A DNA stretch of 64,000 nt from Lepidodermella squamata (Eukaryota; Animalia; Gastrotricha): contig JBLDXI010000024.1 of assembly GCA_047495785.1 (NCBI GenBank), positions 1,426,001-1,490,000 of the forward strand, given 5' to 3'. This document shows positions 1 through 16,595 of this stretch, piece by piece. The stretch's first letter is position 1; each line of letters begins with the position of its first letter. Under the pieces are notes generated by a model that had not been told where the DNA came from, made no database searches, and saw only the letters and a program-made list of their open reading frames with translations. Position numbers and translations under genes: made by a program.

Positions 1-337
1 AGGCGCCTGAAGTGCCATGACGCTTAAGGGATTCGGTAAAACTAGGTCTAGCGCCCTCAGGTTGTTGCATATCACCTAATATTTTTTGGCCAGTAGATAA
101 TGCTTGTTGAAAAATAGACGGAGCAATTACTGGGAAGAAATTTCTGAAAAAGGCACCTAATATATTTCCTATTCCCTGACCCCTATAATGATATGGAAAT
201 TGAATTGTTGCCCCACGGAAATGGTCCAGGTTAGCACCCGCTCCAGCTCCATAGCCTGCTATCAGCGGGGAGGAGTGTTGGCGGAGAAAAAACTGCTGGT
301 ACTTGTCAACGTTTTGGTTAGAATAAGCTAGGGGCAT
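1..337 (-). CDS. Polinton small structural/core-like protein, 3'-truncated by window edge (absent from ORF track)
   Basis: Manual translation from ATG 337: MPLAYSNQNVDKYQQFFLRQHSSPLIAGYG...FRGATIQFPYHYRGQGIGNILGAFFRNFFPVI..., open to base 1. The RGxGIG-amphipathic helix-FR..P pattern resembles a conserved Polinton ORF. Confidence 0.7.
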   Translation of the reverse strand, partial: MPLAYSNQNVDKYQQFFLRQHSSPLIAGYGAGAGANLDHFRGATIQFPYHYRGQGIGNILGAFFRNFFPVIAPSIFQQALSTGQKILGDMQQPEGARPSFTESLKRHGTSGA

Positions 338-375
338 CTTCGGTAATATTAATAATTAGAACTCAGCCACTTATA

Positions 376-1596
376 TTAATATAAGGCTCCGGTTTTTCGG
401 CGAATATGAAGTAGCAATACAACTTTGCTACCATCCACAAAATCGATCAATGCCCCGTTATCGCGGCGGATTTGAACTTGAATTGAATCTATAAAATTGG
501 CTTTTAAAGGTAAATATAGGCCCGAGTTATAAATCACTGTAAAATGTGATGACAAGTCTGAATTTGCCGTAGCAGAAGCCATCGTAGAATAGGTTATCAT
601 TCGAAGGAGGCTAGCTTGGCAATCTCCAACAAAAACATCCGCTGCAACTGAGCAGTAAATGAACAGTGAGTTATTGCCATAATTCAACTGAATGTTGTAT
701 TGAGCTGTAGCACTTTCTTCATAGCATGCATAAATAAAGGCAGGCGGTAAATCATTATCTTTGGTGATTACTGTTTGCTCAGAAAAATCAAAGTGCTGTG
801 CTGAATTTACGCCTTCTTGATTTTCTACCGCCGCTGTCTCATTATTTGCATCCTCCTTAAGTTTTGGTCTGCTAGAAAGCCTAACAATCCCAACTGAGTT
901 GAATAAAATGTGTGGATTTTCACGAATTTGGTGGCTCATATTCCACGCATATGCCAAGGCATACGTTGACTTTATATCAAAAGTGGAAACTTCATTAAAT
1001 TCTGGCTCGTCATTTTTTGGGGCCTTGGGAAAAATGAAAACTCCAGACGGTGTATTCTGTTCTATTGGAGACACAAAACCTAAGAGGCCAGCAGAATCTG
1101 AAGGTATAAACATAGAATATGGCCATTTACAGGTAATTTTAGTTTTTTTGTTGACTGAATCATAATGAGCAAAAATAGAGCCATTACTACTTGAGATGGA
1201 TATTTTTTCATTAAAGTGATCGATTAGTTTGGTTATATTCGCAAAATATTCACCTCCGAAATTTACTTTGTTAATAAAGCCAGTTTCCCATGGATTGTTG
1301 AAACTTTTCATCCGATGTGGCAAAGAGCCAGGATTTGTTAAATAATTAGCAATAATGTCGTTTTTAAAAGATTTCAGCCAGTTACAATCAAGCACATAGA
1401 CTGTATGACGATCAATGCTACTCCACCTAACAGGAATTGTAGCCTCAAGTAGGGCTACTTCATAAGCACGGCAATCGGGTACGCAAATTGGGACAGGGAG
1501 AGCAACTTGATAATCCGACGGAGTATTCGCCGGATGTTGAGAATATGAGGCATTCGAGGGTAAATAAATAAAGAAGTCCTCCTGGATGCTAAGCAT
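376..1596 (-). CDS. Polinton minor capsid (penton-like) protein
   Basis: N-terminal FFIYLPSNAS..PANTPSDYQVALPVPI..YEVALLE and C-terminal LFIYCS....VGD....LLR..Y..L....IDSIQVQIRRDNG.LIDF..KVVLLLHIRR match Polinton minor capsid motifs. Confidence 0.75.
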   Translation of the reverse strand: MLSIQEDFFIYLPSNASYSQHPANTPSDYQVALPVPICVPDCRAYEVALLEATIPVRWSSIDRHTVYVLDCNWLKSFKNDIIANYLTNPGSLPHRMKSFNNPWETGFINKVNFGGEYFANITKLIDHFNEKISISSSNGSIFAHYDSVNKKTKITCKWPYSMFIPSDSAGLLGFVSPIEQNTPSGVFIFPKAPKNDEPEFNEVSTFDIKSTYALAYAWNMSHQIRENPHILFNSVGIVRLSSRPKLKEDANNETAAVENQEGVNSAQHFDFSEQTVITKDNDLPPAFIYACYEESATAQYNIQLNYGNNSLFIYCSVAADVFVGDCQASLLRMITYSTMASATANSDLSSHFTVIYNSGLYLPLKANFIDSIQVQIRRDNGALIDFVDGSKVVLLLHIRRKTGALY

Positions 1597-1792
1597 TTGT
1601 TATGTTATCCTTATCTATCTTTTCTAAAGTAAGGATTGCGCTGTTGCCAAAAGGGGGGAGCTTAGTTTTGAATAAATAGTTTGAAATTTCTATAAGCCAA
1701 ACGGTTATTAGAAGGAAAAAAATGTAGGCCCCTACACGCACAGATGGCTTTTGTAGGAAAGCTAAGAGTGGAGTCGTAGGAACTCTATTCAT
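1589..1792 (-). CDS. Small single-pass membrane protein of the Polinton
   Basis: 67 aa with hydrophobic VGAYIFFLLITVWLI. Overlaps the integrase stop (ATGA) and the start of the penton-like ORF. Confidence 0.5.
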   Translation of the reverse strand: MNRVPTTPLLAFLQKPSVRVGAYIFFLLITVWLIEISNYLFKTKLPPFGNSAILTLEKIDKDNITNA

Positions 1793-3000
1793 GAGGCCAA
1801 GGTTTTGATCTCGTTTGCATCAATCCAACTAGCGGCTTCAATCGGCCAGTTTTGCCATTTCACAAGAGCCTGTTTCTTGCCATTTATAGTGCGATGCTTC
1901 AGAACTTTTTCTATTAAATATGTTTCTTGCGGATGTGCTATCTGAAGCTGCCAATCGTAAAAACTACCTTGAATACGCTTATTCAGAGTATCACGGAGAT
2001 AATACTTGTCGGGGATGGTACAAGTATCTATGCGGTCGATAAAAAAATATTCTTCAGTAAAAATGAAATCTCCTTCTTTGTGAAATAAATCCTTTACACG
2101 ACTAATTCTAACACAATCACCGACAGAAAAAGTCGGTTTGTATAGTAAATTCTTGCGCTTTTCAAGCATCAATTGATCTCTTTTTCCAAAAACATTATTG
2201 TAAGCAACCAAATTTATAGGATCTTCTGGGGAAGCTAGCCATAATTCTAACGGGGCAACCCTAGTGCTGCGATTTTTCATTTGATTGTAAGACGCTAAGA
2301 AAAAAGGTAAGTAATCGATGTAACGCAGCGTATGATTTGCAATTTGATGCCTCGAAATAGTTCTACGAAGCCAACGGTTGAAAATTTCTATGGGTGAACA
2401 CTTGAACATGGAGGTTGTAGTGTAATAATAAACATTGAATTTTTTAAATATTTTTTTAGCTTCTTTGTTGATAAATTCTCCGCCAGAATCTGTAGTGAAA
2501 GAGCGGCAACGCAAATCAGGTGTTAGGCTGCTCAAAAAATTACTGATCTTCTCAGCAGTGTAATTTCCTTCTTTGTTAAGTAAGGGAATACAGAAAGCAT
2601 AACGCGTAAAACAGTCTTTGATTGTAAGTAAATAGCGGGTTCCATCATTATCTTGGCTTGAATCTTGAACTTCAAGAAGATCACCTAGAAAGAGGTCACT
2701 TCTAGCATAAACTTCATATTGCATGAATTGCTTCCGGTTTCTTACACTTAGTGGTTTATATAATGAATATGTTCGATCATGGCTCATAATCTCAGCTAGT
2801 TTTTTATGAGTAAGGGAATTTCTCAGCTCTAAGGGTAATGTAGCTTTAAGTGTTGAGTATAATCTGCGCAGGCCTTGAAATGATCCAACATGTTTCGGAT
2901 CATTATAGAAGCTCAAAACAAACGATTTCAAGTCTGACCTGTGGTTTATTTTAGCATCTCCTTCAGCTAGACGTCTCGCATTGTGTTTATTACGTGGCAT
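1789..3000 (-). CDS. Retroviral-type (rve) DDE integrase with C-terminal chromodomain
   Basis: YNDPKHVGSF, LGDLLE (D), TTDSGGEF (D), PIEIFNR (E), SYN, FSVGDCVRIS, GSFYDWQLQ; chromodomain YLIEKVLKHR...LVKWQNW....SWI. ORF intact. Confidence 0.95.
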   Translation of the reverse strand: MPRNKHNARRLAEGDAKINHRSDLKSFVLSFYNDPKHVGSFQGLRRLYSTLKATLPLELRNSLTHKKLAEIMSHDRTYSLYKPLSVRNRKQFMQYEVYARSDLFLGDLLEVQDSSQDNDGTRYLLTIKDCFTRYAFCIPLLNKEGNYTAEKISNFLSSLTPDLRCRSFTTDSGGEFINKEAKKIFKKFNVYYYTTTSMFKCSPIEIFNRWLRRTISRHQIANHTLRYIDYLPFFLASYNQMKNRSTRVAPLELWLASPEDPINLVAYNNVFGKRDQLMLEKRKNLLYKPTFSVGDCVRISRVKDLFHKEGDFIFTEEYFFIDRIDTCTIPDKYYLRDTLNKRIQGSFYDWQLQIAHPQETYLIEKVLKHRTINGKKQALVKWQNWPIEAASWIDANEIKTLAS

Positions 3001-3003
3001 GAC

Positions 3004-3273
3004 CTAATTCTTCTTTATAGCTAATTTACGGCAAGTAGGGACAACCGAACAATTAGCCATGTGGCTAAATAAATCACCGTTTAAGTGGAATAATAAATCA
3101 TTTATATTATATAACATCCGCTCAGTAGACTCGACAAGTTGCCGCAGGTGAAGGAGTTCGGCTTGAGTATTGCGAACTTCCATAACAGCGAAAAAGCTGA
3201 TTAAAATGGTAACCAGGGATAGCAGCAATAGGATCGGTAAAACAGCACGCGGAATATCTGTTGTTTGATGCAT
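3004..3273 (-). CDS. Small membrane-anchored coiled-coil protein of the Polinton
   Basis: 89 aa, N-terminal hydrophobic helix followed by a heptad-like segment; ends 3 nt before the integrase ATG. Confidence 0.55.
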   Translation of the reverse strand: MHQTTDIPRAVLPILLLLSLVTILISFFAVMEVRNTQAELLHLRQLVESTERMLYNINDLLFHLNGDLFSHMANCSVVPTCRKLAIKKN

Positions 3274-3437
3274 AATAAATTACGAAGACTTTAAAAACGG
3301 GGAAATTTACCGATAGCCATATTTTTATTTCTGCTGCGAATTTTGAAAATTGATAGATAATGATGAAAGTAGAAATAATGATTTTAGCTTAAAAAAAGAC
3401 GGCACGCGATTAATCTTCCCTCATTCATTAAATCATT

Positions 3438-4217
3438 TTATTGTTGTTTGATATACAGAAAAAAAGGCGCCAATTTAACAAATGCTATTTTTATAAGAGA
3501 TAACGAAAAACAGCCGCTCATAATCATTTTTCCAGTGTGAAACAGTGTGGCAGATACATTTAACTTTGGTTCATTTTCATTAGTGCTGACTTTGGAGAAA
3601 ACACGTATACGCAACCCAGGAAAAAATTCTGGTTGGTAAACGCATATTTTAGGAAATTGAAAAGCTAGCAGGCTAAGATTGACAGTTTTATGTAAATCGT
3701 AGAACAATACTATATTAGTAATTATTGGGTCACGGATTATCAACCGTCGATTAACAATTTTTCTGAGTGTAGCTTGAAGAACTCCAAAAGCAGTAACACA
3801 ATTCGAGGCTGTTTTGGTACCACTACAAATTATAGCTCCGGATGAAAATAATAAAAACGTCGCGTTAAAAGCAGGTACTTTATAGAACAAAGCACTCGAC
3901 ATTTTTTTTGGGTTATATTTTGCACAAGGTAAAATTAGGGCTAGACTATCTAAATTAAATAGAAAATTTGACCTTGATTTAGCCATAATATTTGAAATAG
4001 AGTAATCAATATCATATTGTATATTATTTACTTCCATATTTAATGGTGGGGATTTCAATAGAAAAAAAGGTTCAGTGCTAGATTGTAGCTTTAAATCAAC
4101 AGGATAGGATATAGTCAAATTTATGATCGTGGTCGACTGTGATGCGGCTGATTGAAGGCTTGTAACATACTTGATTTCAGCTGTTTCTGTTTGAACTTTG
4201 CGATAGGTTGAGGGCAA
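3438..4217 (-). CDS. TATA-box binding protein (TBP)-like protein encoded inside the Polinton
   Basis: Two TBP repeats: ISNIMA..NLDSLA....AKYNPKK...TFLLFSSGAIICSGTK and ITNIV..VNLSLLA...YQPEFFPGL...TLFHTGKMIMSG. Intronless. Start uncertain (TTG 4217, an internal ATG, or fusion with the upstream ORF). Confidence 0.9.
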   Translation of the reverse strand: MPSTYRKVQTETAEIKYVTSLQSAASQSTTIINLTISYPVDLKLQSSTEPFFLLKSPPLNMEVNNIQYDIDYSISNIMAKSRSNFLFNLDSLALILPCAKYNPKKMSSALFYKVPAFNATFLLFSSGAIICSGTKTASNCVTAFGVLQATLRKIVNRRLIIRDPIITNIVLFYDLHKTVNLSLLAFQFPKICVYQPEFFPGLRIRVFSKVSTNENEPKLNVSATLFHTGKMIMSGCFSLSLIKIAFVKLAPFFLYIKQQ

Positions 4218-4576
4218 ATCATGACCAAAAAAGAGGCGACAGAATCTTGCTTTCGTGACTCATGATTGGTAATTGGAACAGCTGGTTTATTTTTCGCCTT
4301 GCATGGCGTTTTCGCCGATTTAGCAACTGATTTCTTCTCAGTACCTATGACTTTTTTCTGAATTTTATGTTTAGCATTGCGTTTCGGTTGATTACGAACC
4401 GCAGTTTTTGCTAATCTAGAGGCTGATGTTTGTTCAACAGGTTCCTTGGTAAACGTACTCGTATTCGGTTCATTCAGGTTTATTGGTACGAAATCATTGT
4501 TAGAAAAAAACAATGGAGAAGCCGGAGATGAATTGAAGAAAGCTTCCATAAATTCAGTAAGAAGAATAATATTCAA
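4121..4576 (-). CDS. Lys-rich low-complexity ORF, possibly the N-terminal part of the TBP-like gene
   Basis: 151 aa, basic. Overlaps the TBP ORF, which lies in the -1 frame, across a T6 run at 4227-4232. Confidence 0.5.
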   Translation of the reverse strand: MNIILLTEFMEAFFNSSPASPLFFSNNDFVPINLNEPNTSTFTKEPVEQTSASRLAKTAVRNQPKRNAKHKIQKKVIGTEKKSVAKSAKTPCKAKNKPAVPITNHESRKQDSVASFLVMICPQPIAKFKQKQLKSSMLQAFNQPHHSRPRS

Positions 4577-4717
4577 AGTTCTTGCGTTTGAAATGAAAAA
4601 TGATCGAATGACGGAAGCCGGCCGCGGTGATTGGTTGGAGTTGCTGAGCCCCAGAACCTTCTGATTAGGAATGAATAAATAACAAAGGCATTATATAAAT
4701 AAAATAAACTGACCAAA

Positions 4718-5524
4718 TTAGGTCGAAGAGCTGTTGTTGAAAGGTAAGACGGTAGCGACAGGTTGTAGTGCGATGGAGCGTTGCATGATGCCCGGCCATT
4801 TACTATTCGCACCTTCCTGCTGACCATTAAGAACATCGATGACTGATGCCCATGGAATTTTCTGAGCGTGTTGATAGGGTGGAGGTACGACGTTCTGCAT
4901 TTCTACTGAGACCCTACGACCTGCCCGAAGTAAAAGGTAGAATATGTGCCGCAGGTTTACGCTGACACCATTAAAGTTTTTTAACAAATCGTAAAATAAA
5001 TGTTGGATGTAGATATATCGGCCTTCGGTGTAGGTAGGGTGTGCCGTTAGGCCATACCAGAAACTTTCTTCCAGGCCAGACACAATAATAGGGTTAGGGC
5101 TATCGTCGAGGCAATCATCCAAAAGGTAATCACTTTCAGTAAAAATAATTGAGTGACAAATGGACGACCATAAATCATCCTGGCGAACAAGGAGCGTGGT
5201 AGTATCATTTAGGATGCTCTTCCATAAATCATGCCCAACGATGGAAGCACAGGTAGCTAAATTATATTCGGCAAAATGTTGAAAATTCGTGCCATCGTGG
5301 GTTGATGGGAAGAGACGAGCAACGGCTCTTTTGTAGCCGAGATAAACATGATCGATAGTAATATGTTGGCCTTTCGAGTTGGCAATCAAATCGAATATGG
5401 CGACTTCAGCGAATGTAATGCGTCCAGAGAGGGTATTTAGTGATATATTTAATGATTTCGGAGGAAAAAGTAAATCTTCTCGGTAGAAAATCGCTTCATA
5501 AGATTCATCATAGCCAATAATCAT
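4718..5524 (-). CDS. Polinton hypothetical protein (268 aa)
   Basis: Long ATG-initiated ORF in AT-rich DNA, co-oriented with the other element genes; no motif recognised. Confidence 0.6.
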   Translation of the reverse strand: MIIGYDESYEAIFYREDLLFPPKSLNISLNTLSGRITFAEVAIFDLIANSKGQHITIDHVYLGYKRAVARLFPSTHDGTNFQHFAEYNLATCASIVGHDLWKSILNDTTTLLVRQDDLWSSICHSIIFTESDYLLDDCLDDSPNPIIVSGLEESFWYGLTAHPTYTEGRYIYIQHLFYDLLKNFNGVSVNLRHIFYLLLRAGRRVSVEMQNVVPPPYQHAQKIPWASVIDVLNGQQEGANSKWPGIMQRSIALQPVATVLPFNNSSST

Positions 5525-5627
5525 AGCAACTTATTTGACCTTGCTATCCCTACCTTAATCTTTGCTTTTATTCGATTTTCCTTGAGTAAAAAAATGTTTC
5601 TTATATTTTTTAGATTACAGTTAAGTT

Positions 5628-5845
5628 GGATTGATAGGAGAAAGTAAAGTTTATTTACAAAACAAGTTAATGGACATATCAGGAAAGAAAGGAGTATTTA
5701 TAAATGCTAATGGCCAAAGTAAAAAATATTTATTATATTTTAGATTAAAGTTAAGGGGGATTGATAGGAGAAAGTAATGTTTATTTACAAAAAAGGTTAA
5801 TGGAAAGTAAGGTGTATTTATATAAGCTAATGGACAAAGCAGGAA
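5628..5845. repeat. Two imperfect direct copies with ~130-bp period, each containing a TATA-like box
   Basis: GGATTGATAGGAGAAAGTAA-(A/T)GTTTATTTACAAAA...GTTAATGGA...GTATTTATA...GCTAATGG at ~5628 and ~5758. Confidence 0.75.
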
Positions 5846-5917
5846 AAAAGATGAGCTAGCTTGAGTTCTTAGATTACTGTATCTAATCAAGTATCTTTTT
5901 GGAAACTAAGAAAATTG

Positions 5918-6193
5918 ATGGAAGCAGAAGACATGTAAGTTTGGTTCTTTTTTAAAAAATCTTGAATAAATTCTGTTATGTTTAGTCGTGAACGCTTATA
6001 TCAAGCACTGCTAAGCATTGACCATCTGCAACGAGCAATGACAGCAGCTATAAACGAAATGTTGAACACACAATTGGAGGTTGAACAATTGATCAATGAT
6101 GCATCACGATTTATGATAGCAACTCGAGCAAGAGATCAGGCATGCAGCCTAGATTGTGGTGATTGGAATTGTAATTACTGTTACAAAGATTGA
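5918..6193 (+). CDS. Small spliced gene with C-terminal Cys cluster near the Polinton end
   Basis: ATG 5918, exon 5918-5934, intron GTAAGT...TTTAG 5935-5985 (51 nt), in frame with ORF 5978-6193: MEAEDIRERLYQ...CSLDCGDWNCNYCYKD. AATAAA follows the stop. Confidence 0.6.
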
Positions 6194-6356
6194 AAAATTA
6201 AAAATAAATTATCATGTGTGCATTTTTTATATTACAAATTAATTCCCAGAAAGAATGCAAAAGCATGACTCATAATAGTTTTAGAAAAAAAGTATGCCCG
6301 CTGTATATTTTATCATAAACATTGCGTACATTTATGGGGCAACGGATAAAACGCAC

Positions 6357-6540
6357 TTATATATTTATGTGAAACGGTTATAGTAAAAATGACCGTAGTG
6401 CTATTACTGATACAACGCTCGTATATTTATGCCAAATGGCTATAGTAAAAATCGCCGTACTGCCATTACTGATCCCAAATTGCGTATATTTATACCAAAC
6501 GGCTATAGTAAAAATCGCCGTACTGCCATTACTGATCCAA
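6357..6540. repeat. Three ~63-bp subterminal tandem repeats of the Polinton
   Basis: Unit CGTATATTTATGCCAAATGGCTATAGTAAAAATCGCCGTACTGCCATTACTGATCCCAAATTG at 6420-6482, near-identical copy 6483-6540, diverged copy ~6357-6419. Confidence 0.9.
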
Positions 6541-6585
6541 AGTTCCCATCCTTACTACTATTACTGTCTCAGCCATCTACACCCC

Positions 6586-9429
6586 ATGCGTCGCTTCACC
6601 TGCAACTTGAAATTTATTTGCTGTATATCCTTGTCGTGCTGTACTGTCCTGCTGGTTTGGTGCAATTTAGGGTTGCGATGTTTACCGGCTGGTGATCGCC
6701 AAGCCTGCCAGGTAAATGACTTTTCTGTTTTTGCCAGGTAATTAAATCTAATTGTGGCTTGTCATTTCGTCTATAGAGCGACGCAAAAATAACTGAAGAG
6801 AATCAGCTGAGGCGACGACAAGTCAGAGAAACTTGCGACTTGCTAGCAAATAGGCCGAACCCGCCTCTCAAAAGTCTTGATTGGGAGTATTTCCGGAATA
6901 GTCGCCATCGTCGGCACAGGTCTGCTTGTCATAATTTCTGTTGCTCATTTCTTATTTCATTCTTCTCCTCGTCCATTCAATTAGTGGTCATGCGAATTGG
7001 TGGTTTTATCTTTTCGTTAACGAAAAATACAAATTCGTTTATTGCGCGTAAGGCCTGATAAATAAAAACCTCCTTTCTTAATCTCTAATCAAATGCAAGC
7101 ACCCCGAAAAATGGGAATACAAACGTTCGCGACTATATCAAGCACCTCAACCAGCATCCAGACTGGGAAACATACGAGTACAATCGTTCATTGACGGGAG
7201 GCTTTTTTAAATCTGCGCCGCATTCCCGACGCCTGGAAGAATACGAGCCTGAAGAGGCAAAGAGGATAATGGCTGAATACACTAAATTCGCATTTCTTCG
7301 AGAACCTGTCGAACGGTTAATATCAGCGTGGCGCGAAAGATTGTCTACAACTGAATCGGAAGGCTTCCTGAGGGATTATTACACGGTAAAAATTGTGCTT
7401 TTTTTAATATTTGAGATTTATCTTTTGATGATTTCTTCTCGTTAGAAGCTATAGCAAAATTCGGAATTTTTATTTCTTGTGGGTGGTTACCATCGTAATT
7501 ACAGGGTAAAAAAAAACAATTTTAAACCTTGAATTACTTACGTCGCATTTACACAATCGCCTAACTGAAACACGTAGCCCATATTTTAAATTATGAGCTC
7601 AAAATGAGTGTGTGTAGCGCAATAAATCCGCAGCGCATTTTGAACGAACGCAGCCCAAATTACGCAAGCTGCAGATTATAATGGATGCAGCGCAAATCAA
7701 GAAGTGCGTAGCACGAGAAAGTAACACGTTTAGACGAACACTTTTTCCAACTTTTCAAAACAAATCACTTGGTGGAACAACTTTTGCATTTGCAAGCTGC
7801 TGAGCGACACCAGCACTGTCGACCTTGGGAAACTGATTTACAGCCCGAAGAACAGCTGCATTTCACGCCTTTTTTCTTCGCGGCCGGCTCTTCATAGCAA
7901 GATCCCGCCAGCACATCATCATCATCATCATCACTCGTCAGGGGCAACGGCTGGAGCTACGGGAGCTACTACGACTACCGTTGACCGGTAATTTTTCTGC
8001 GGCCGGTGTACAGCTCAAGGACGACGGTGTGAGAATCGGTCACTTTCGCCGACATGACGACGTTCGATGTCGTTTGTCTCAAGAGTATAGCGAACTTGTG
8101 GCTGAGTTGCGTTCATTATCTCCCTAAGACCTGCCCTACACCGCCGGTAACGGCCGCCATTTAGGCAATAATACGTCGTAACCAGCCCAGCTTTTCTCTC
8201 AAAATGGTGCTTCTCGTGGCACCATTTTTCGGAATTGGCCGCCTCCGCGAGTTCCCTCATCTTTTGCTCGCAGCCATGGATTCGAACTGGCCAATGGCCA
8301 CCCAAACAAATTTATTCTTTTTGTAAGCTAATGTCTCCTCGTCTGGATGCTCGCCTTCCTCCCCGGAACCATTGTCCTCATCGAAACCATTTCAACCAGC
8401 GTATTTTTCTATTCATAGTCATCATCAGCCTCAAAGCCAGGCTTGATCCTCATGGATTGTTTGAACATGCTTTCTCTTAGCAATTAAAGCATATAGTTCT
8501 ATACAATATGGACAATATGCGTTGACATTCGACGCAATGACGTCAAGGTCAAGTTGGGAGTATCTTGGGGGGTTTTGTGTCCATAATCATCATCACTACG
8601 AGTAACAAGCTTCAGCATGAATATGAAGTTCTCGCGCGAAGAATGCGATGGGAATAATGTTTATGCGCTGCTCAGGCTATGCGCGGCACTTAGAAAAAGG
8701 TGTAAATTTTTCATTTTTGACGCATTTACCAATGCGGCTTATAGCAAGAAAAGTATGCATCGGGGATGAAAACGGACCATCACCAGCAGATGCCTCTTAT
8801 AAAACTGCAGTAGGAATTAGGAAATGATGAAAAGCCATTTTCCTTAAACCACACCTAACCAAACTTATTTGCACACTGGCGAAAGTTTTAAAGAAGGGCT
8901 TAGCCCACGGTTTTCACTTGTGACGGCTATTTTGATTTAACTCTAAATTCATGAATAATTAATAGGTAAATTTCAATTATGTTCAGTTTATGTTCAGTAT
9001 TTAAAATCAACTGTTGTTATGTAGAAAATTGGGAGCCGCATAATTCGGGATTATCGCCCAAATGCTACGCAGGACGAGATACGTGCCGGTTTGCGTGTTA
9101 CATTCGACGAATTTTTGCAGTTCCTACTGGGCGAGAAAAATTCGACGCGCGACCTCGACCTTCATTGGCGACCGCAGTTGCATGTCTGCAACTTTTGTGC
9201 TATTGATTACGATTTCATTGGCTTATTTGAAAACTTCAACTGCGAGCTGGAACACTTCGCGCGACGCGTCACTGGCCGAAAAAAAGTCCCTCGTCTGCCC
9301 GGACCGAAACACAAACACGATGTGCCATATTTGTCGAGAACAACTTATGACAAGAATTTATTGAGTCGAGTGATTGATCTTCATTACTCCTGGGACTATC
9401 TCATGTTTCCATATCCACGACCTATTTAA
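6586..9429 (+). CDS. Carbohydrate sulfotransferase (Sulfotransfer_2, CHST8-14-like), multi-exon; copy 1
   Basis: Type II anchor exon 6586-6711; FVNEKYKFVYC; 5'-PSB PKNGNTN; 3'-PB FLREPVERLISAW; last exon DLHWRPQLHVCNFCAIDYDFIGLFE...YSWDYLMFPY. Confidence 0.88.
7500..8975 (-). mobile_element. Decayed DNA-transposon-like insertion in a sulfotransferase intron (boundaries approximate)
   Basis: This intron is ~1.6 kb versus ~0.2 kb in the paralogue. It contains stop-interrupted minus-strand coding remnants: YYCLNGGRYRRCRAG and a terminal KCSCSSGCKS..RQCWCR..C.CKSC cluster like those ending some transposase/integrase proteins. No TIR or TSD found. Confidence 0.45.
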
Positions 9430-9629: not shown

Positions 9630-11526
9630 AATTCAGAAGAGTCGACGGCGAAAGCAAACGATTTTAACAACTACTTCGCAGATCTTGGTAGAAAAACCGC
9701 TGAGTCCATCGATACTCCTCAAAATATCGATAGGAATTATTCAACCGATCATCACTTTCATTTTGGCAATATTTCAGTTGCCATCGTCAAAGAATGCCTT
9801 AGCAAGTTACCGCCTCGAAAGCCTACAACAGCATCGGATGGTATTCCCGAATGCGTACTGAAAATAGCGTCTGACTTTCTCGCTCCTCATCTAGCTTTAA
9901 TTTTCAACAAGGTCATTGAAGAAAGGAAAATTCCGGAAATATGGAAAAAGGCGACTGTTACGCCCTTGTACAAAGATGGCTCTAAAGACATAGTAGGAAA
10001 TTATCGGCCGATATCCATTTTATCTCCTGTTTTTCGCACATTCGAACGTTGTCTTTCATTTCAAATTAAGGCTTATCTACGTAAGATTCAGTTCATTTCA
10101 CCCTCTCAGTTCGGTTTTAGGAAAAATCACTCAACCGAGACTTGTCTTGCGAAAATGACAAATGATTGGCGCTGTGCTATTGATAAGGGCTTCACGACGG
10201 TTGTAGTCAGCATTGACATGAGCAAGGCCTTTGATACTCTCAGCATGACCGGTATTTTGTCCTCCTTGCGCAGTGCGGGTTTTGATGAAGCGGCAATCGA
10301 GATTTTAACTAGTTATCTTACGGATCGCAAGCAAATTACCAAAATTAATGGACAATTTTCTCAGACTGCAAGCTTAGAATTCGGAGTACCTCAGGGTTCC
10401 GTCTTGGGCCCTTTATTATTTACGATCTACGTTAATGAACTGCCTCTGACATCACTCAAGTCTACTGTTATTCAATATGCAGACGACACCACCATTTATT
10501 TCTCGGCTAAAAATGTGACTGAAATTGAAAGCGTTCTTCAAAAAGACCTTGACAATCTCGTACTATGGCTAGGTTCTAACTGTCTCAAAGATAACGGCAA
10601 AAAATCCCAGCTAATGATCGTTACACTGAAATCAATTGGCAAAATTAATATTACTATAGGCGGGGTCTCAATTGAACAGACAGATTCGATTTGTTTATTA
10701 GGCTTCACTTTAGACGAAAAACTGCTCTGCAAGGAACACATCGAGAAAGCTTGCTCTAAGGCTCGAAAAGGTATTTATGCGCTTCAATTAGCGGCAAAGA
10801 ATGGCTTGAATAGGGACTGCCTGAAATCAATGGCAAATGGCTTGATTTTTTCGCACTTACAGTACTGCGATATTATTCTAAATGAAGCCTGTCCGACTTC
10901 TCTTCAAAAACTACAATCTTTGCAGGATAAGGCTGTCAGAATTGTCATAAATGCGCCGGATTGTGCCGACCCTTCTCCTCTACGCGACGAGCTTCAGGGC
11001 AAGCGAAACGTGCACATTGCCACCTTAATGTACAGATGTCTTGCTGGTGATGCACCCGATGTTATGAAATCTATTTTTGTTCCTAATCCTCCATCTTCTA
11101 CTCGTTCTTCACGTCTCAGCTTCAAAATTCCTACTATGAGACTTGACTACGGCCAGGCCTCTCTTAGTTACGCAGGGCCTCTCTTGTTTAACAATTTACC
11201 ACTCCACTTTCATTGTCCTCATCATCGCCCAGTTGATATTACTTCCTATACTAGCCTTTCCTCACGATGCGATTGCGGCTTCAAAATCTGTTACAATGCT
11301 CACTCTTGCCGACAACTTGTTTACAATTTTCTGTTGACTAAACCTAAGCTCAAATCATATAGATGCTAAATTTTGTACATCTTTTGTTTTGTTATTATCA
11401 AACTTTGAAACGGATTGAAACATGACTCGAATTTTCTGCCACTTTTATACCACTTGAAACTTTTTGTTATCGTGCTCTCAACTTTGGGATTTATGCACTT
11501 AAATAAAAATAAATAAATAAATAAAT
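9630..11526 (+). mobile_element. 5'-truncated non-LTR retrotransposon (CR1/L2-like LINE), reverse transcriptase
   Basis: Frame open from ~9630 (ANDFNNYF...DGIP...IPEIWKKATVTPLYK) into ORF 9966-11369 with NYRPIS, QFGFR, DMSKAFD, GVPQGSVLGPLLF, YADD. (TAAA)n tail at 11500-11526. No endonuclease domain. Confidence 0.92.
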
Positions 11527-12568
11527 GGTCATTTGAAATAATAAAGGGCAGAACCGTATTAATAGGCAGGGCCTTGTATGACGTGGCTTGCATGAGCGCC
11601 TCCTAAATAACGATGAAAAATGAAAAAGCCATTGAAGGTTAGTCAAATTGGTTGAAATCGCCCTGTTGATGTGAAGTGAACGTTGTTTCGGTGCGCTATT
11701 AGTGAGGAGGGGGTAAGCGAGCAATTTGCTAGGGTAGTATCTGCTAGGGTGGATAGGGAAATATTGACCACTTTTCGCAGAGTCTTATAACGATGATAGA
11801 TAGAGACACTCGCGACAGACGGAAAAACGATTGCAGCAAGGTGGACATTTTTAGCGAACAAAATCAGACGTTTGTATGGAGCCGCCGGGTCTTGGTACGC
11901 ACGTCTCTTAATAATGAGCTATACTTCCGAGAGCATTTTCGTTATTAGATGTTTGCGCTGCTAATAGGCCTTGAATATTGAAAGAAAGCTGGCAAATTAG
12001 CCATCACGAATTTGAGTTGGCATTCTTTAAGTTCCGCCATTTTGAACTTTCTGTAATTTGAAAATCATCTCTCTATCCATTTCTCTATGCGCCGTGATGT
12101 TCATTTAGCACGCAAATTACGAAAAGATTCATCTTTTCTCTGATGCAGGTGGCTGCAGTGATGCCGTAGAAAAACACGCGGCGCTAGCTATACCCCGGCT
12201 TTTGGAGGTGTAAAATGAACAAATCGATACATATAGTATCATATTTTTCAAAAAGGGGCTGAAATCTTGGCAATTATTTGGATGCGGCGTTCAACCTCCC
12301 GGTGATTCTCCTCAGGTATGTGATTAAAAATAAGATCATCACGCATTTGAGTTTACGTTTCGCATTCAAGTTGCCCTGATCGATTATTGCAGCAAACATA
12401 GCACCCATCCGTACTTCTCCGTGGGCAAGGATGTAATGTTCTTCTAGTTCCTGCGCGAAATTATTGGGCACTAGACGGGCGAATATCCGTGAGAATTCCT
12501 GCTAATTACCTATGGTTCGATTCTATATTAACTGACATCAAACCTTGTATTTTCAGTCACTGTCAAAA

Positions 12569-15163
12569 ATGACTTTCTCGAAGGTTTCCATACTTGTAAT
12601 CGCACTCACTAGCTTCGTCAATGGTCAAATTATTAAGAAATACAACATTTCAATGCTGCAGATGTTTCCCATTAATCATATAGGATGCCCGCCAGCTGTG
12701 AAAATCGCAATCGACAATGCCAACAACCGTACTGATGTACTGCCTGACTATAACATCGTACAGGACTATCGCGATGAAGAAGGCTTCGCGGTAGGCTACG
12801 CGCCAGTCCGCGAACTCGTGAGATACGGCCGAGCGTGGGAAAACAGGCCCAATGACGGTCTCGTTCGCTCACCGATTTTTCTCGGACCGTTCATATCCGT
12901 CGGCTGCAAACCCTACGGGAAGCCGCTGAAATATTTCAACATGGTTGGACTTGCTATTGCATGCACAGCGCCTTTTCTCGCTGATCATATGACCTATCCG
13001 AATCTCTACAGTGTTCAGTCAAACGGAGAGCTGAACGCTATATCTCTGGTTCATTTCTTTAAAGACGTTGGAAAGTGGTCGACTATAGGGATCCTAACGA
13101 TCGCCAGCTCTCCAAGCGACTATATATCAGCAACATACGTCAACAGATACGCCTTGGAAAGTGGCATTGAAGTTCCAACTTTTAACATTGTCTTGGACAT
13201 AACCGACGATGCCATCAACACGCTTCTATTTCATGACGTTCGAGTCATTGTTGTCTACATCACCAACGAGACTCTGTTGTGGCGTTTTCTCTGCAAAGCT
13301 TATTTCGCTGGAATCACCGGTGCGCGATATATTTTCTTCATGTCAAACTCTTTGGCAGCGGAACCAAACAACATCAGGCCAGAAAACTTACTGGATAGTT
13401 GGTGCACAAGAGAAATCGTGCGAATACAGTTTAATTTCGCTTTGTTTGTCGGGCCGATAACTCAGGTCATGGATGATAGCAGAGTTAGCGAGTTGGGTTA
13501 CAATACTACGTATTTCGAGGAGAAAATGTTCGAAATTTTGAAGAGACCTCGCTCTGCAACTAAAGGATCGTTGAAATATGTCTGCCATGATGCTACCATG
13601 ATGGGGATATACGCCATGCATGATGCCGACAATCGGCTGAAGCGCGAATTCAACATGTCGCTGAGAGACATGAACACAAATCCCGAAGTCGTAATGAAAG
13701 TCGTGAATCAATCCGTATTGACTGTGAACATCTCTGGCCTGAGAGGTCAACTTTTTTTCAGCAAGCGAGGATACGCCGAAAATGATTTGATTATTTACTC
13801 CTACTATGATCCTGAAGGATATCGCAATAAGTTTTCTTCAGTTGAGGTGGATACAAGCCGTAACTACATGTTCTATGGTCGGTATAAAATTTCTTCTCTC
13901 GAGCCGATGGATTGGGCTGCTTGGAAGAATGGCGGCAAACCCCCCAGAGATTCAGCATTTTTAATTTCCTACATTCAAGACATTTCTTCCGGTATATCAC
14001 TGTCAGTAATAGTGATTGCGAGTATTTCGTCAGCAATCACTCTGCTAATGCTACTATTTACTGTCAAGAACAAAAGAAATCCTGAGTTGGTCATTTCCAG
14101 CAGCCTAAAAATCGTAGGCTTCGGAGGCTGTATTTTGCTTAATGGGGCCGGAATCGCTTATTCATCGAAAACTAGTGTATCTAGTTTCTCCATTGCTATC
14201 ATCCGGCTTAGCCTAGTTGTTGCTTCAATGTCCCTCCTAACGGGAGTGGTGTCTTTCCGGGCATTCTTTCTAGCGCGTAAACTTCCGCCTCCACCGAAAC
14301 GAGTGAAAGTTCATCAGGATGGAAAAACAGTTAACATGATCACTGTTAACAATTCTAATCCACGACTCAGTATTGTTGTACCGACCAGAGGAATAGAAGT
14401 CTCGAATCCCACATCAGGAAGCCCAGTACCACCTAAGGAACACAAATCATTGGCGCGATCCCCTTCTAACACCTCGCACATTAAATTGGTTGCATCAACT
14501 TCAAATCAGCCCTTAATAGCTCCGACTGGCGAAAGGAAACTATCCACCACAAATTTAGGAACACATCTGCCAGTCACTCGAACAACGTCAAATCAAAGCC
14601 AGCAATTTTCTGCTAACATGCAAATGACCCACCGCCACACCGTTATGCTAACAGAATTCGAAGACGGAATCCAAAAAAATACACTAGTTTCTACAGTTGG
14701 TTTCATGGTCATCAATGGTTTTCTGCTTGCGGTTTGGCTACTTTTCGATTCATTCAGTTGTCAAACAATCACCGCCCCTCGTGCCAAAAATTATGACCCA
14801 AATAATGACACAAACTACGACATCTCTGTCGTGACTTGCTCATCGGCCAATGGAATCTTCTGGATGATGGCTCTCGCGCTTTTACACGTTGTAGTCCTAG
14901 CTTTTTGCACATTCCTAGGCTACAGGGTCAAACAACGCTTGAAACTGCTTCACGGTCATTGCTGCCGTGAAATGGGTGGAATATTACTCGGCCCGCTGAA
15001 TGCACTCTCGCTGCTGCTCTGCTCGATTATGATCGTCTTCATTTTAAAAGATGAAATTCGCCAACACACTGCCGTCGCATTCGCGGCTTTGCTTATTTCA
15101 CTGACGACGAGCGTCAGCCTAGGATACTCAACACTGAAGGTCGCGTTCGAAAGGCGCGGCTGA
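12569..15163 (+). CDS. Class C GPCR, GABA-B-receptor-like (Venus flytrap + 7TM), single coding exon
   Basis: Signal peptide MTFSKVSILVIALTSFVNG; PPAVKIAIDNANNRTDVLPDYNI; LADHMTYPNLY; HDA; ISGLRGQLFF; WKNGGKPPRD directly before TM1 with no Cys-rich domain, as in GABA-B; seven hydrophobic segments. Confidence 0.88.
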   Translation: MTFSKVSILVIALTSFVNGQIIKKYNISMLQMFPINHIGCPPAVKIAIDNANNRTDVLPDYNIVQDYRDEEGFAVGYAPVRELVRYGRAWENRPNDGLVRSPIFLGPFISVGCKPYGKPLKYFNMVGLAIACTAPFLADHMTYPNLYSVQSNGELNAISLVHFFKDVGKWSTIGILTIASSPSDYISATYVNRYALESGIEVPTFNIVLDITDDAINTLLFHDVRVIVVYITNETLLWRFLCKAYFAGITGARYIFFMSNSLAAEPNNIRPENLLDSWCTREIVRIQFNFALFVGPITQVMDDSRVSELGYNTTYFEEKMFEILKRPRSATKGSLKYVCHDATMMGIYAMHDADNRLKREFNMSLRDMNTNPEVVMKVVNQSVLTVNISGLRGQLFFSKRGYAENDLIIYSYYDPEGYRNKFSSVEVDTSRNYMFYGRYKISSLEPMDWAAWKNGGKPPRDSAFLISYIQDISSGISLSVIVIASISSAITLLMLLFTVKNKRNPELVISSSLKIVGFGGCILLNGAGIAYSSKTSVSSFSIAIIRLSLVVASMSLLTGVVSFRAFFLARKLPPPPKRVKVHQDGKTVNMITVNNSNPRLSIVVPTRGIEVSNPTSGSPVPPKEHKSLARSPSNTSHIKLVASTSNQPLIAPTGERKLSTTNLGTHLPVTRTTSNQSQQFSANMQMTHRHTVMLTEFEDGIQKNTLVSTVGFMVINGFLLAVWLLFDSFSCQTITAPRAKNYDPNNDTNYDISVVTCSSANGIFWMMALALLHVVVLAFCTFLGYRVKQRLKLLHGHCCREMGGILLGPLNALSLLLCSIMIVFILKDEIRQHTAVAFAALLISLTTSVSLGYSTLKVAFERRG

Positions 15164-16595
15164 GACGCCCCTGATTAGCTGAAATACTAGCTTCGCATTG
15201 AGAGTTATTTTCGAAGCTGTCTCTAAGTTATAGCTTCATTATAAAGACGGCTTGCTTTTCGAAGACGTAATGTGATATGTGATGTTGCGTGCATGTTAGT
15301 AATCGAATAAAATTTTAGCTGGCATGCACAAGTTCGTGGAATAACCCTAGAAAGTCGGGCGTATAAGCTGCCTAACCAAGAATGACACAGGCAATTTGTA
15401 CTAGTGATACCTTCTATTTACAGCTGACAACATGCAACATGCAATCATTTCGATGTCTTATATTCAAGTTTAACATAAGACCTGGACCTTACCGCGTGTC
15501 GCCAAAAAAGAACAAAATGCGCAGTTTCTTTGCCGACCAGATGAAAAATACTATAAATCCTGACGTGCATTTCACCGAAATAAAATGGCCGTGTTCAACT
15601 TGAATGATCAATTGTTTACGGTTTAGGCCATCGCATTCCTTGATGATATTGGAAACAAAGAACGAGGGCCGGTTAGTAGGTAAAGTCCACCCCAGGTGTA
15701 AAAGAGTTCAATAATAATTTTAATAATCAAGAAATGATATATGCCCTAGAAAAAATCCGGGCGTGGCAAAATGCTAAGGTATTGGGTACGCAATTTTGAA
15801 AAATTAGTACTATTTCACGTTAAAACTTGACACCGGTCACATGACTGAAAACTCATCAAAGTCATGAGCCTTCGATTTCTGTGACAAAAAATGATTAAAT
15901 GATTGAAAAATGAATGGTAGACTGGGATGTACAGCTAATTTTTTTCGAATTTCAAAATAAAAAATTAATTGATGTTAAGGTCAAATGACTCCGAAAAACT
16001 CAGAATTCAATGAAAAACCTGCGATTTTTACAATTCTGTTTTTTCTCTTTTTGACCCCCTGACTTCCTAATTTTTTCTCGAATATATATATAATTCTTCT
16101 GGTGGATACGCTCCTTTTGATCTAAAAATAAATTAGGAACTCGAGTCTGCTGTGCCCCTAATATGTAATCGCTCAAAGTGTTTGTAAATGCACTTTTTAT
16201 GGCATTTATGCGTTTTCGGTCACTTATGACGAATTTTGTCACTTTATCCAAGAAGTAGTCTGACCAAACTGCCGACCATATATTTGTACGCAGCATATCC
16301 CGGGCTGTCTAGCGATATTATTTTATTCAATTTTTCTCTGCAGGCCAACATTAGGCTATAACCAACCGTCGTTCTTTATTGCGTCAGATTTTTTCGATTT
16401 TTTTATATAGATAGATTAATAAAAAATAGCATCGACCGACTTGCATTTCTTGCAGTTTTTCCTAGTTTTTCGATCAGCATTGCATCCCTGGGAAGCACCG
16501 ACGGCGATGTTACCTGTCAATCTTATAGGCTAGCCAGCTTGCACAACATAAATCAGAATTATACGGGATTTCAAGCTGGATTTTTCTTAAATATT

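Follow-up and report, generated by a model that had tools for sequence, protein, structure and literature searches.

A predicted TATA-binding protein gene within an integrase-bearing virus-like element

Introduction

DNA virus-like elements of the Polinton/Maverick kind are of middle size and encode no RNA polymerase. To our knowledge, it is poorly understood how the genes of such elements are switched on in the host nucleus, and a TATA-binding protein (TBP) encoded by the element itself would offer a concrete handle on this step. So far, most viruses described as carrying a TBP are giant viruses or mirusviruses, and herpesviruses have proteins that mimic its function; the locus presented here would add a small genome to the list. 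A TFIIB-like gene accompanies the TBP-like gene in nearly all viruses that have the latter, and divergence of the viral proteins at the positions that contact TFIIB has been interpreted as a sign that the TFIIB of the host is not used by viral TBPs (PMC7221094).

Among herpesviruses, ORF24 of KSHV illustrates how a nuclear DNA virus steers host RNA polymerase II (Pol II) via its own TBP-like factor (bioRxiv 10.1101/2025.08.25.672222), and a section heading of the same preprint calls the predicted structure of ORF24 incompatible with direct TFIIB binding. ORF24 and its homologues, which act as TBP mimics for late genes, resemble the present case as a functional model, that is, a polymerase-less nuclear virus that directs host Pol II to its own promoters; no homology is claimed. 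In ORF24, the mimic domain is part of a large protein that makes extra DNA contacts, whereas the protein described here is a plain and complete TBP core.

A gene labelled 'TBP' also appears on the map of a MELD/polinton-like virus according to the legend of Fig. 5 in Starrett et al. 2021 (PMC8502044). As far as that map goes, and by the gene label alone, the likeness is that a TBP-like gene is borne by a linear dsDNA genome of virus-like character and middle size, one that has an adintovirus-like PolB and, in some cases, an integrase. That part of the paper deals with datasets of non-animal eukaryotes, and the gene is labelled there without analysis, whereas the genes that flank the present element are animal-type. 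The label on the MELD map reduces the novelty of a TBP on a virus-like element. Our literature search returned no account in which TBP is a common gene of Polintons or occurs in an element of an animal genome. Here we describe such a gene in a 64-kb stretch of genomic DNA from Lepidodermella squamata, called the window throughout, to whose positions all coordinates refer.

Results and discussion

The TBP homologue lies on the minus strand. Its maximal open frame extends over 3438..4217 and starts with TTG, and the first ATG is codon 61, so that the likely coding sequence is 4037..3438 (199 amino acids plus stop). The 180 nt upstream of this ATG contain no other ATG and overlap with ORF151, which is read in a different frame. 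The preliminary description had given the span 3438-4217 without a strand; this holds for the open frame, while the likely gene is confined to 3438..4037 and the rest is an ATG-less extension. The 199-aa form matches the Pfam profile PF00352 with E=1.1e-24 and the maximal ORF with E=2.7e-24 (85-86 bits versus a cut-off of 22.9). Since the match consists of two stretches without interruption, the gene is intronless across both repeats. No internal stops were present, and a stop-free run of 259 codons has a probability of 1.6e-8 at the local composition. Thus, the earlier identification of an intronless, two-repeat TBP homologue is supported by the profile check, with E=1e-24 and both repeats uninterrupted.

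PF00352, AlphaFold2 and Foldseek agree in assigning a core-only TBP that has no N-terminal domain. The AlphaFold2 model is a confident two-lobe fold (pLDDT 93.6, pTM 0.84) in which the strand and helix elements recur in each lobe and the full topology is present. Its saddle of two pseudo-symmetric lobes was aligned by Foldseek to the eukaryotic TBP cores of human, yeast and Arabidopsis structures with TM 0.80-0.82 and rmsd of 1.7-2.2 Å (about 2 Å). Repeat 1, the N-lobe (residues 12-93), is encoded at 3759..4004 on the minus strand and is the more eroded lobe. Repeat 2, the C-lobe (residues 104-198; 3444..3728, minus strand), retains the Asn, the Phe at both columns and the stirrup sequence Pro-Glu-x-Phe-Pro-Gly, and contains a loop insertion of about 10 residues, the aligned span being 178 residues in the query versus 166 in the chain. 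BLASTP found no similarity between repeat 1 and repeat 2, which indicates that the lobes are highly asymmetric.

Residue columns were scored on an alignment with 88 TBPs. Asn fills the columns of N16 and N108 in 100% and 95% of the aligned proteins, and the columns of F64, F139 and F166 contain Phe in 95%, 98% and 100%. M46, on the other hand, replaces the residue of a column that is Phe in 91%, which leaves three of the four Phe residues that mark a TATA-bending TBP proper and set it apart from TRF2/TLF-type factors. The alignment thus confirms the preliminary reading, in which both Asn and three of the four intercalating Phe were kept and the fourth had become Met. The DNA-face residues retained are N16, N108, L62, F64, V110, F139 and F166. 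Deviations on this face comprise, in the N-lobe, Met at the first Phe column and Met at the Val column beside the first Asn, and, in lobe 2, Thr at one Leu column; Val-to-Ile and Thr-to-Ser changes are common to both lobes. Because of this combination of substitutions, the half-site preference of the protein would probably be altered.

The surfaces that contact protein partners are less well preserved. At the acidic pair that contacts TFIIB, the column of Q135 has an acidic residue in 90% of the TBPs and that of E137 in 99%, so that one of the two is kept; these columns are those of the two Glu positions described as contacting TFIIB (PMC7221094). Three of the five basic columns of helix H2, in the patch of the N-lobe that serves regulators, are lost: where Lys or Arg is found in 64-84% of eukaryote-like TBPs, the protein has G85, V86 and A89. 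In cellular TBPs this basic patch is used by TFIIA, TAF1, Mot1/BTAF1 and NC2 (PMC7221094). The DNA-bending face of the protein seems to be kept, but most of the surface by which TBP is controlled in the cell is gone. As a strongly diverged natural TBP, it provides a comparison for deciding which surfaces of a universal factor are dispensable.

Compared with the cellular eukaryotic TBP core, the protein shares the two-lobe saddle, the Asn of both columns, the Phe of three columns and the stirrup of the C-lobe, and the residues of its N-lobe stirrup are nearer to the eukaryote-like matches than to the short archaeal-type matches. It differs in that its identity is only 24-27%, the N-terminal domain is missing, the first Phe column has Met, one TFIIB-contact acid is Gln, three of five N-lobe basic columns are lost, lobe 2 contains about 10 inserted residues, and the gene is intronless with the codon usage of the element. 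Identity is about 28% to every class of TBP that was compared, a level at which a tree would show the protein as a long branch without a firm place, and the highest value among 1.84 billion (1.84e9) protein representatives was 37%, with no match at E<=1e-30. A word-index search returned a single weak match, from a collection that does not hold the proteins of the source genome, as no query returned a match to itself. Despite the overall identity of about 28%, 30 of the 49 columns conserved at >=60% are kept and the ORF is intact. Judged by these two measures, intactness and column conservation, in the one copy available, 4037..3438 on the minus strand encodes a TBP-family protein that is intact, core-only and, as its sequence indicates, kept under constraint.

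Two other sources of the gene were considered. An archaeal origin did not fit, as the best score was 69.6 bits versus cut-offs of 181-347 for the NCBIfam PRK00394 models and the structure is nearer to eukaryotic TBPs. An origin from giant viruses is unsupported, since the BFVD proteins reached 7-21% identity and TM 0.45-0.73, below the values for cellular TBPs (24-27%, TM 0.8). The TBP-likes of giant viruses (Nucleocytoviricota) and the mirusvirus TBP do share with the present protein a virus-carried TBP fold in which the DNA signature is kept and the host-partner signatures have diverged, a pattern described in PMC7221094. However, the protein encoded here is much nearer to cellular TBPs than the giant-virus TBP-likes are, in sequence as well as in structure. 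Moreover, giant viruses and mirusviruses have their own polymerase and/or a TFIIB-like partner; neither is visible here, where most of the element lies outside the window.

The visible part of the virus-like element occupies 1..6550 and is read from the minus strand; it is cut by the left edge of the window, and its right end falls between ~6300 and 6566. From the right end inwards, the order of genes on the minus strand is ORF268, ORF151, TBP, ORF89, the integrase, ORF67, ORF406 and an ORF cut by the edge. These eight ORFs are intronless and co-oriented and give a coding density of 92% over 1..5524, and the co-oriented neighbours on either side of TBP are 83 and 164 nt away. The GC content of the element is below that of the flank, and the cumulative GC skew rises steadily to ~6300 and is then flat. 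The element also departs from host ORFs in its composition at third codon positions. In TBP, GC3 is 0.24, versus 0.43-0.53 in host ORFs, and codon usage (RSCU) correlates with that of the neighbouring element genes at r=0.69 and with that of host ORFs at r=0.24. Scans for repeats and composition revealed no boundary signal between the integrase and TBP. Host genes in the window bear introns. From the close co-oriented neighbours, the coding density, GC3, RSCU and the lack of introns next to intron-bearing host genes, we conclude that TBP, to judge by these features of the sequence, is part of an integrase-bearing virus-like element and does not belong to the host gene set. The position between the integrase and the end of the element, as first described, is confirmed, with the integrase on one side and a repeat-rich end zone on the other. 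Co-orientation with viral genes, also claimed, stands as far as orientation is concerned, the visible genes being the integrase and ORFs without a recognisable family.

These same data bear on a host origin, according to which TBP would be a lineage-specific host paralogue or a host-derived retrocopy that happens to sit beside a transposon integrase and is not cargo. Such an origin would agree with the single copy seen and with the fact that the two ORFs separating TBP from the element end have no homologues. Against it stand the identity of at most 37% to every cellular TBP, a codon usage that is the element's and not the host's, the intronless gene packed between neighbours at 83 and 164 nt in a region where host genes bear introns, and the absence of a boundary signal between integrase and TBP in the scans mentioned above. 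We therefore regard a host origin as extremely unlikely. In particular, a recent retrocopy of host TBP, which had been named as the finding that would overturn the first interpretation, does not describe this gene: the protein is far too divergent from anything (<=37% identity), and its codon usage is unlike that of host ORFs.

It is also very unlikely that TBP is a relic, functional in the virus lineage and now silent in an endogenous copy. The copy is indeed integrated in a host chromosome region, but all eight visible ORFs of the element are open, with no stops and no frameshifts seen, and the catalytic triad of the integrase is intact, which points to a copy that is either young or maintained. 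The search for other copies, which the preliminary description had proposed, was carried out over the 64-kb window, where neither blastn nor tblastn found a second copy.

The integrase, at 1789..3000 on the minus strand, is a stand-alone retroviral-type enzyme of 403 aa, unbroken, with a catalytic core (D107-E205) at ~2386-2682 and a C-terminal chromodomain at ~1804-1920. Pfam gave 29.6 bits for Chromo and 25.5 bits for rve, the latter below the cut-off of 32.6. A profile of the integrase family matched the integrase cores of foamy virus and other retroviruses at 3e-14, and chromodomains were matched as well. D107, D171 and E205 are invariant in the alignment and make up an intact DDE triad. 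The word-index search returned five relatives, all of them stand-alone proteins of 305-389 aa with 26-32% identity that come from environmental or run-assembly data. No contig of a top TBP match equals in length any contig that bears one of these relatives, which is weak evidence at most on the co-occurrence of the two genes. We rejected the Pol of an LTR retrotransposon as the source of the enzyme: it is stand-alone with its own ATG, no RT/RNase H lies upstream on the same strand and no long direct repeats are present. The adintovirus integrase gene has a predicted chromodomain (PMC8502044), and the likeness to Polinton/Maverick and adintovirus integrases lies in a DDE enzyme of retroviral type, encoded on its own, whose chromodomain is C-terminal. 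The difference lies in an identity of only ~30% to the nearest database relatives and in the other Polinton genes, which are not visible in the window.

Indeed, in a Pfam scan of 46 ORFs, among them every long one, none was recognisable as pPolB, packaging ATPase, adenain-like protease or a capsid gene, and the element runs off the left edge. Repeats at the visible end are direct and tandem, and only this end is inside the window. Two ORFs are putative capsid genes by position: ORF406 (376..1596, minus strand) and the edge-cut ORF (2..337, minus strand; 5′ part, at least 112 codons), which starts 38 nt after the ORF406 stop. ORF406 had no match in Pfam, PHROG or PDB and no word-index homologue. 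As a capsid protein it was set aside, given the lack of a family or PDB match and a single-sequence AlphaFold model that is unusable (pLDDT 31). Of the original designation as a Polinton/Maverick, then, the integrase type holds, while pPolB, ATPase, protease and capsid are not recognisable in the visible part. The Polinton/Maverick label is unproven, the chromodomain integrase type being its sole basis. We infer an element of the Polinton/Maverick/adintovirus kind, of middle size, without an RNA polymerase of its own and dependent on host Pol II. Because no Polinton hallmark is visible and only one end lies in the window, membership in this group and the absence of an own polymerase or TFIIB-like partner are assumptions of ours.

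The lack of any hallmark Polinton gene in the window would also be expected if some other integrating element of the DNA virus-like kind had its edge here (for example, a MELD virus whose replicase is different, or a virus of larger size), in which case TBP would be orthogonal and work with element-encoded partners (a TFIIB-like factor, perhaps a polymerase). TBP is a core gene of mirusviruses, present in 59% of genomes (PMC10132985), and occurs sporadically in mirusvirus-like algal elements (PMC10675990). The near-constant company of TFIIB-like genes in viruses that bear TBP-likes (PMC7221094), together with the divergence of one TFIIB-contact acid here, would fit as well. Nevertheless, a chromodomain integrase that stands alone and genes that are small and tightly packed suit the adintovirus/Polinton type, the protein is far nearer to cellular TBPs (24-27%, TM 0.8) than to giant-virus TBP-likes (7-21%), and no TFIIB family match was found among the visible ORFs. 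On balance, we consider an element of another kind unlikely.

With an intact TBP gene inside it, the element probably supplies its own transcription-start factor. The best reading, to which we give about an even chance, is that of an initiation factor private to the element, which works with host Pol II and does not respond to the regulators of host TBP. On expression of the element, TBP would sit on AT-rich, TATA-like sequences of the element and, to judge by its nearly complete set of DNA-face residues, would bend these sites. Host TFIIB and Pol II would then be recruited through the C-lobe stirrup, with one of its two signature acidic residues. The factor may be largely blind to the control exerted on host TBP, since it has no N-terminal domain and has lost most of the basic N-lobe patch bound by TFIIA, TAF1, Mot1/BTAF1 and NC2. 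The net effect would be a TFIID-independent initiation of transcription that is private to the element. The earlier suggestion that the factor may redirect or compete for host initiation is a reasonable one, and the signature columns lead us to favour redirection with escape from host regulators over plain mimicry. Two observations weaken the reading of private initiation. First, the loss of one of the two TFIIB-contact acids, read in the way proposed for viral TBPs (PMC7221094), speaks against the use of host TFIIB. Second, no motif shared upstream of the eight ORFs exceeded shuffled controls.

The same two observations would be at home with a competitor or decoy, a TBP that binds host TATA boxes or soaks up partners unproductively and so dampens host transcription, for instance of defence genes, while the genes of the element use other routes. 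A DNA face largely kept next to eroded partner surfaces (Gln at one TFIIB-contact acid, three of five N-lobe basic columns lost) is what such a blocker might show, and no element-specific upstream motif was found in front of the ORFs. However, the stirrup of the C-lobe is canonical in other respects, with the second acidic residue kept, and constraint on both lobes and on the whole fold would not be needed for mere blocking; we judge this competitor role to be rather improbable. Private initiation with host Pol II thus remains our preferred reading. Its most elaborate form, a capsid-bearing, Pol II-dependent animal element of the Maverick type whose orthogonal TBP has altered DNA specificity, is insensitive to regulators and serves a private class of promoters, is doubtful. 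Were it true, the orthogonal TBP would represent a minimal viral system for pre-initiation, with a true TBP fold as its basis, from a lineage without any relative above 37% identity in public protein data.

Among the remaining genes of the element, ORF67 (1589..1792, minus strand) encodes a small protein with one hydrophobic segment resembling a membrane span and overlaps the integrase stop and the ORF406 start, and ORF89 (3004..3273, minus strand), which encodes a small protein with a strong hydrophobic segment, ends 3 nt before the integrase ATG. ORF151 (4121..4549, minus strand; 142 aa from its first ATG) is Lys-rich and basic (pI 10.4), with an ambiguous codon usage, and the outermost gene of the string, ORF268 (4718..5524, minus strand), is acidic (pI 5.5). 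The arrangement of genes suggests that both ORF268 and ORF151 belong to the element. A putative gene on the opposite strand, ORF71 (5978..6193, plus strand), lies inside the end zone. For ORF268, ORF151, ORF89, ORF67, ORF71 and the edge ORF, matches to families and structures were at chance level only. Rfam and tRNA scans of the entire 64-kb window gave no matches.

The end zone starts with a very AT-rich non-coding stretch (5591..5880) in which a unit of ~130 nt is repeated ~2.3 times. Further out, a tandem repeat of 62-63 nt in about three copies (6358..6566) corresponds either to the outermost repeats of the element or to the upstream region of a host gene. The genes that flank the element are animal-type, and host ORF fragments of the sulfotransferase type are found from ~7190 rightwards.

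A TBP gene encoding a complete two-repeat fold

The preliminary description placed a TATA-binding protein (TBP) homologue at 3438-4217. This interval is an open frame on the minus strand, with P=1.6e-8 for a stop-free run of its length at the local base composition, but its coordinates describe the longest possible frame, which starts at a TTG. With the first ATG only at codon 61, the likely coding sequence is shorter, 4037..3438, and encodes 199 aa; the 180 nt upstream of it are devoid of ATG and overlap the neighbouring ORF151 in a different frame. The Pfam TBP family (PF00352) matched the maximal frame with E=2.7e-24 and the 199-aa form with E=1.1e-24, in two stretches spanning both repeats uninterrupted, which bears out the reading of this gene as a two-repeat TBP homologue.

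For structural and residue comparisons we used an alignment of the window TBP with 88 TBPs from an exhaustive search. With this alignment as input, AlphaFold2 returned a model with the full strand/helix order of both lobes (pLDDT 93.6, pTM 0.84) and lower confidence only in one loop of lobe 2, where the window protein carries an insertion of ∼10 residues. Foldseek against the PDB gave only TBPs as top matches, eukaryotic ones with TM 0.80-0.82 (rmsd 1.7-2.2 Å, identity 24-27%) and archaeal ones with TM 0.70-0.73. Among predicted viral structures, the model matched TBP-like proteins of giant viruses (TM 0.45-0.73), whose identity to the window TBP was only 7-21%, lower than that of eukaryotic TBPs.

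The TBP is isolated among known sequences

A phmmer search of 1.84 billion cluster representatives retrieved 1125 proteins at E≤1e-3, of which 70 reached E≤1e-10; no protein reached E≤1e-30. The top identities were 29-37%, and a word-index homologue search gave one weak match. The top matches included singletons, unlabelled and derived from run assemblies or metagenomes, as well as several proteins scoring like archaeal TBPs and a few divergent ones; among the longer matches with a source name there were ciliate TBPs. Mean identity was ∼28% to matches with a long N-terminus and likewise ∼28% to those with a short one, and archaeal TBP models gave the window protein 69 bits, against cut-offs of 181-347. 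Such isolation rules out a recent origin of the gene by retrocopying from a canonical host TBP.

Two of the database relatives, P0003 and P0011, both from short contigs of run assemblies, are divergent eukaryote-style TBPs with a lobe 2 loop insertion placed as in the window TBP; they retain Phe at all four of the near-invariant Phe columns.

Conserved residues and partner surfaces

The alignment showed that both near-invariant Asn columns hold Asn in the window TBP (N16 and N108) and that three of the four near-invariant Phe columns hold Phe (F64, F139 and F166). At the remaining one, the first, where 91% of the sequences have Phe, the window protein has Met (M46), a residue shared at this column by none of the nearest proteins. 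The earlier residue reading, two Asn and three Phe kept with Met at the remaining Phe position, was therefore correct. Overall, 30 of the 49 conserved columns are kept, far above the expectation from overall identity, which speaks for past purifying selection on this sequence.

The DNA face is mostly kept, and replacements fall at conserved DNA-facing columns. Besides M46, Met replaces the Val beside the first Asn, Thr occupies a Leu column of lobe 2, and Val-to-Ile and Thr-to-Ser replacements are present in both lobes. The latter lie at residues 70/72 and 172/174, equivalent conserved DNA-facing columns of the two lobes, with Ile where ∼75% of the sequences have Val and Ser where ∼70% have Thr; to judge from the alignment, this symmetric pair hints at a co-adapted DNA surface. 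As for partner surfaces, the C-lobe acidic pair corresponds to Q135 and E137, and three of five columns of N-lobe helix H2 hold Gly, Val and Ala where 60-84% of eukaryote-like TBPs have a basic residue. The protein has no N-terminal domain. In yeast TBP numbering, which we assigned from alignment spans and the known residue numbers, the changes presumably affect classical DNA-contact and TFIIB-contact positions; the Leu column occupied by Thr we take to be one of the positions altered in a published altered-specificity TBP.

Ravarani et al. (PMC7221094) divided TBP signature positions into three sets, namely DNA binding, two C-lobe Glu contacting TFIIB/TFB, and a basic N-lobe cluster for TFIIA, TAF1, Mot1/BTAF1, Brf1/2 and, by their account, NC2. 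According to that study, viral TBPs retain the DNA-binding set and diverge at the other two.

The TBP gene lies in a compact string of co-oriented genes

From 5524 to the left edge of the window, eight ORFs follow one another on the minus strand, all co-oriented, in the order ORF268, ORF151, TBP, ORF89, integrase (403 aa), ORF67, ORF406 and an edge ORF that starts at 337 and exits the window. The TBP gene is thus co-oriented with the integrase and its neighbours, as had been proposed. Coding density is 92%, neighbouring ORFs either overlap slightly or are separated by at most 164 nt, and the visible genes contain no stops or frameshifts; truncation is not judgeable for ORFs lacking homologues. 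Neither a repeat nor a compositional break was found between the integrase and the TBP gene. TBP has a GC3 of 0.24, the remaining element ORFs range over 0.32-0.42 and host ORFs (n=11) over 0.43-0.53; in synonymous codon usage, TBP correlates better with the remaining element genes (0.69) than with host ORFs (0.24). Introns split host genes of the window (Sulfotransfer_2, DUF229); the element genes are intronless.

The GC content of 1-6200 is below that of the remainder of the window, and cumulative GC skew climbs steadily to ∼6300 and is flat thereafter. On its right, ORF268 borders an end zone of ∼1 kb, a non-coding and strongly AT-rich stretch that contains ∼2.3 copies of a ∼130-nt unit (5591-5880) and a small plus-strand ORF (5978-6193), and host sulfotransferase-type ORF fragments extend rightwards from ∼7190. 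We place the right end of the element approximately between ∼6300 and 6566, with no sharper limit, since the opposite end of the element falls outside the window. At the switch from element to host composition there is a 62-63-nt tandem repeat (6358-6566, ∼3 copies and a partial fourth), which is either the element tip or part of a host sulfotransferase upstream region.

A provisional Polinton/Maverick-like assignment

In Pfam, the integrase matched the chromodomain family with 29.6 bits, and rve only below threshold. Its only relatives, 305-389 aa long and 26-32% identical to it, are likewise stand-alone; they have an rve domain and most also a chromo domain, and D107, D171 and E205 are invariant in the alignment with them. 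The family profile matched foamy-virus and other retroviral integrase cores at 3e-14, as well as many chromodomains. The relatives are environmental, since the cluster of one of them (P0155) comprises a protein that carries a cyanobacterial assembly annotation and is found also in freshwater metagenomes. This member, P0158 (WP_304012278.1), is a stand-alone rve and chromodomain integrase annotated as Cylindrospermopsis raciborskii, and its source is probably a eukaryotic virus-like contig within a bacterial assembly.

No family or homologue matches were obtained for ORF268, ORF151, ORF89, ORF67, ORF406 or the edge ORF. ORF151 is basic (pI 10.4), ORF89 and ORF67 have one hydrophobic segment apiece, and a single-sequence structure model of ORF406 was unusable. 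The Pfam scan covered 46 ORFs, including all the long ones (the window has 49 ORFs of ≥100 aa); 11 short ORFs (100-166 aa) and a small ORF overlapping the integrase and ORF89 lay outside it. Among the 46 ORFs scanned there was no pPolB, packaging ATPase, adenain-like protease or recognisable capsid gene, and the window contains no second copy of the element. We provisionally call the element Polinton/Maverick-like on the basis of its stand-alone chromodomain integrase, the chromodomain predicted likewise in the adintovirus integrase gene (PMC8502044), and its compact, virus-like gene packing.

A putative element-private initiation factor

In the likeliest working model, the window TBP would be an initiation factor private to the element. 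This model draws on the mostly kept DNA face, the Q135/E137 acidic pair, the loss of basic H2 columns and the absent N-terminal domain. Its targets would be AT-rich boxes, among which its preference may have shifted; contact with host TFIIB and Pol II would persist, and host regulators would be evaded. No common motif was found among the eight upstream regions of the element ORFs, which weakens the model of private initiation but, with so few regions (n=8), is no disproof of it.

Giant viruses commonly carry TBP-like genes. In mirusviruses TBP is a core gene (PMC10132985), and it occurs sporadically in mirusvirus-like algal elements (PMC10675990). The nearest case in terms of function is that of the herpesvirus late-gene TBP mimics (bioRxiv 10.1101/2025.08.25.672222). 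For polinton-like viruses, the legend to a figure of Starrett et al. 2021 (PMC8502044) mentions a TBP, which the preprint calls a homologue of a host protein. In the literature on Polintons, Mavericks, polinton-like viruses and virophages, we found nothing on TBP, TATA or TFIID beyond this legend. As it is the only such mention found, TBP is not a documented common Polinton gene, though not without precedent among elements of this size, and novelty is reduced to that extent.

Flanking genes

The gene content of the flank looks like that of an animal, probably an invertebrate and not human. A reverse-transcriptase ORF of 467 aa (9966-11369, plus strand; RVT_1, E=2e-32) is surrounded by fragments of sulfotransferase genes and is a separate retroelement outside the TBP element. 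An uninterrupted plus-strand ORF of 872 aa (12545-15163) begins with a GABA-B-receptor-type ligand-binding domain (first ∼420-510 residues); its remainder matched no Pfam family. Two plus-strand ORFs (35046-36935 and 43170-44747), each with a membrane and an ATPase domain, are halves of P-glycoprotein/ABCB1 type, with vertebrate P-glycoproteins as best PDB matches. Between them, a minus-strand ORF of 693 aa (39198-41279) matched Transposase_21 weakly, and the halves may form a single full ABCB gene with an intronic transposon. Three intron-bearing DUF229 genes form a tandem array on the minus strand (44991-48621, 55268-57850 and 60636-63239). Fragments of Sulfotransfer_2 paralogues, at least six in all, are dispersed over both strands (7191-9429, 16539-17285, 27761-28303, 31440-31925 and 53753-54103 on the plus strand; 50859-51676 on the minus strand) and represent a local gene-family expansion.
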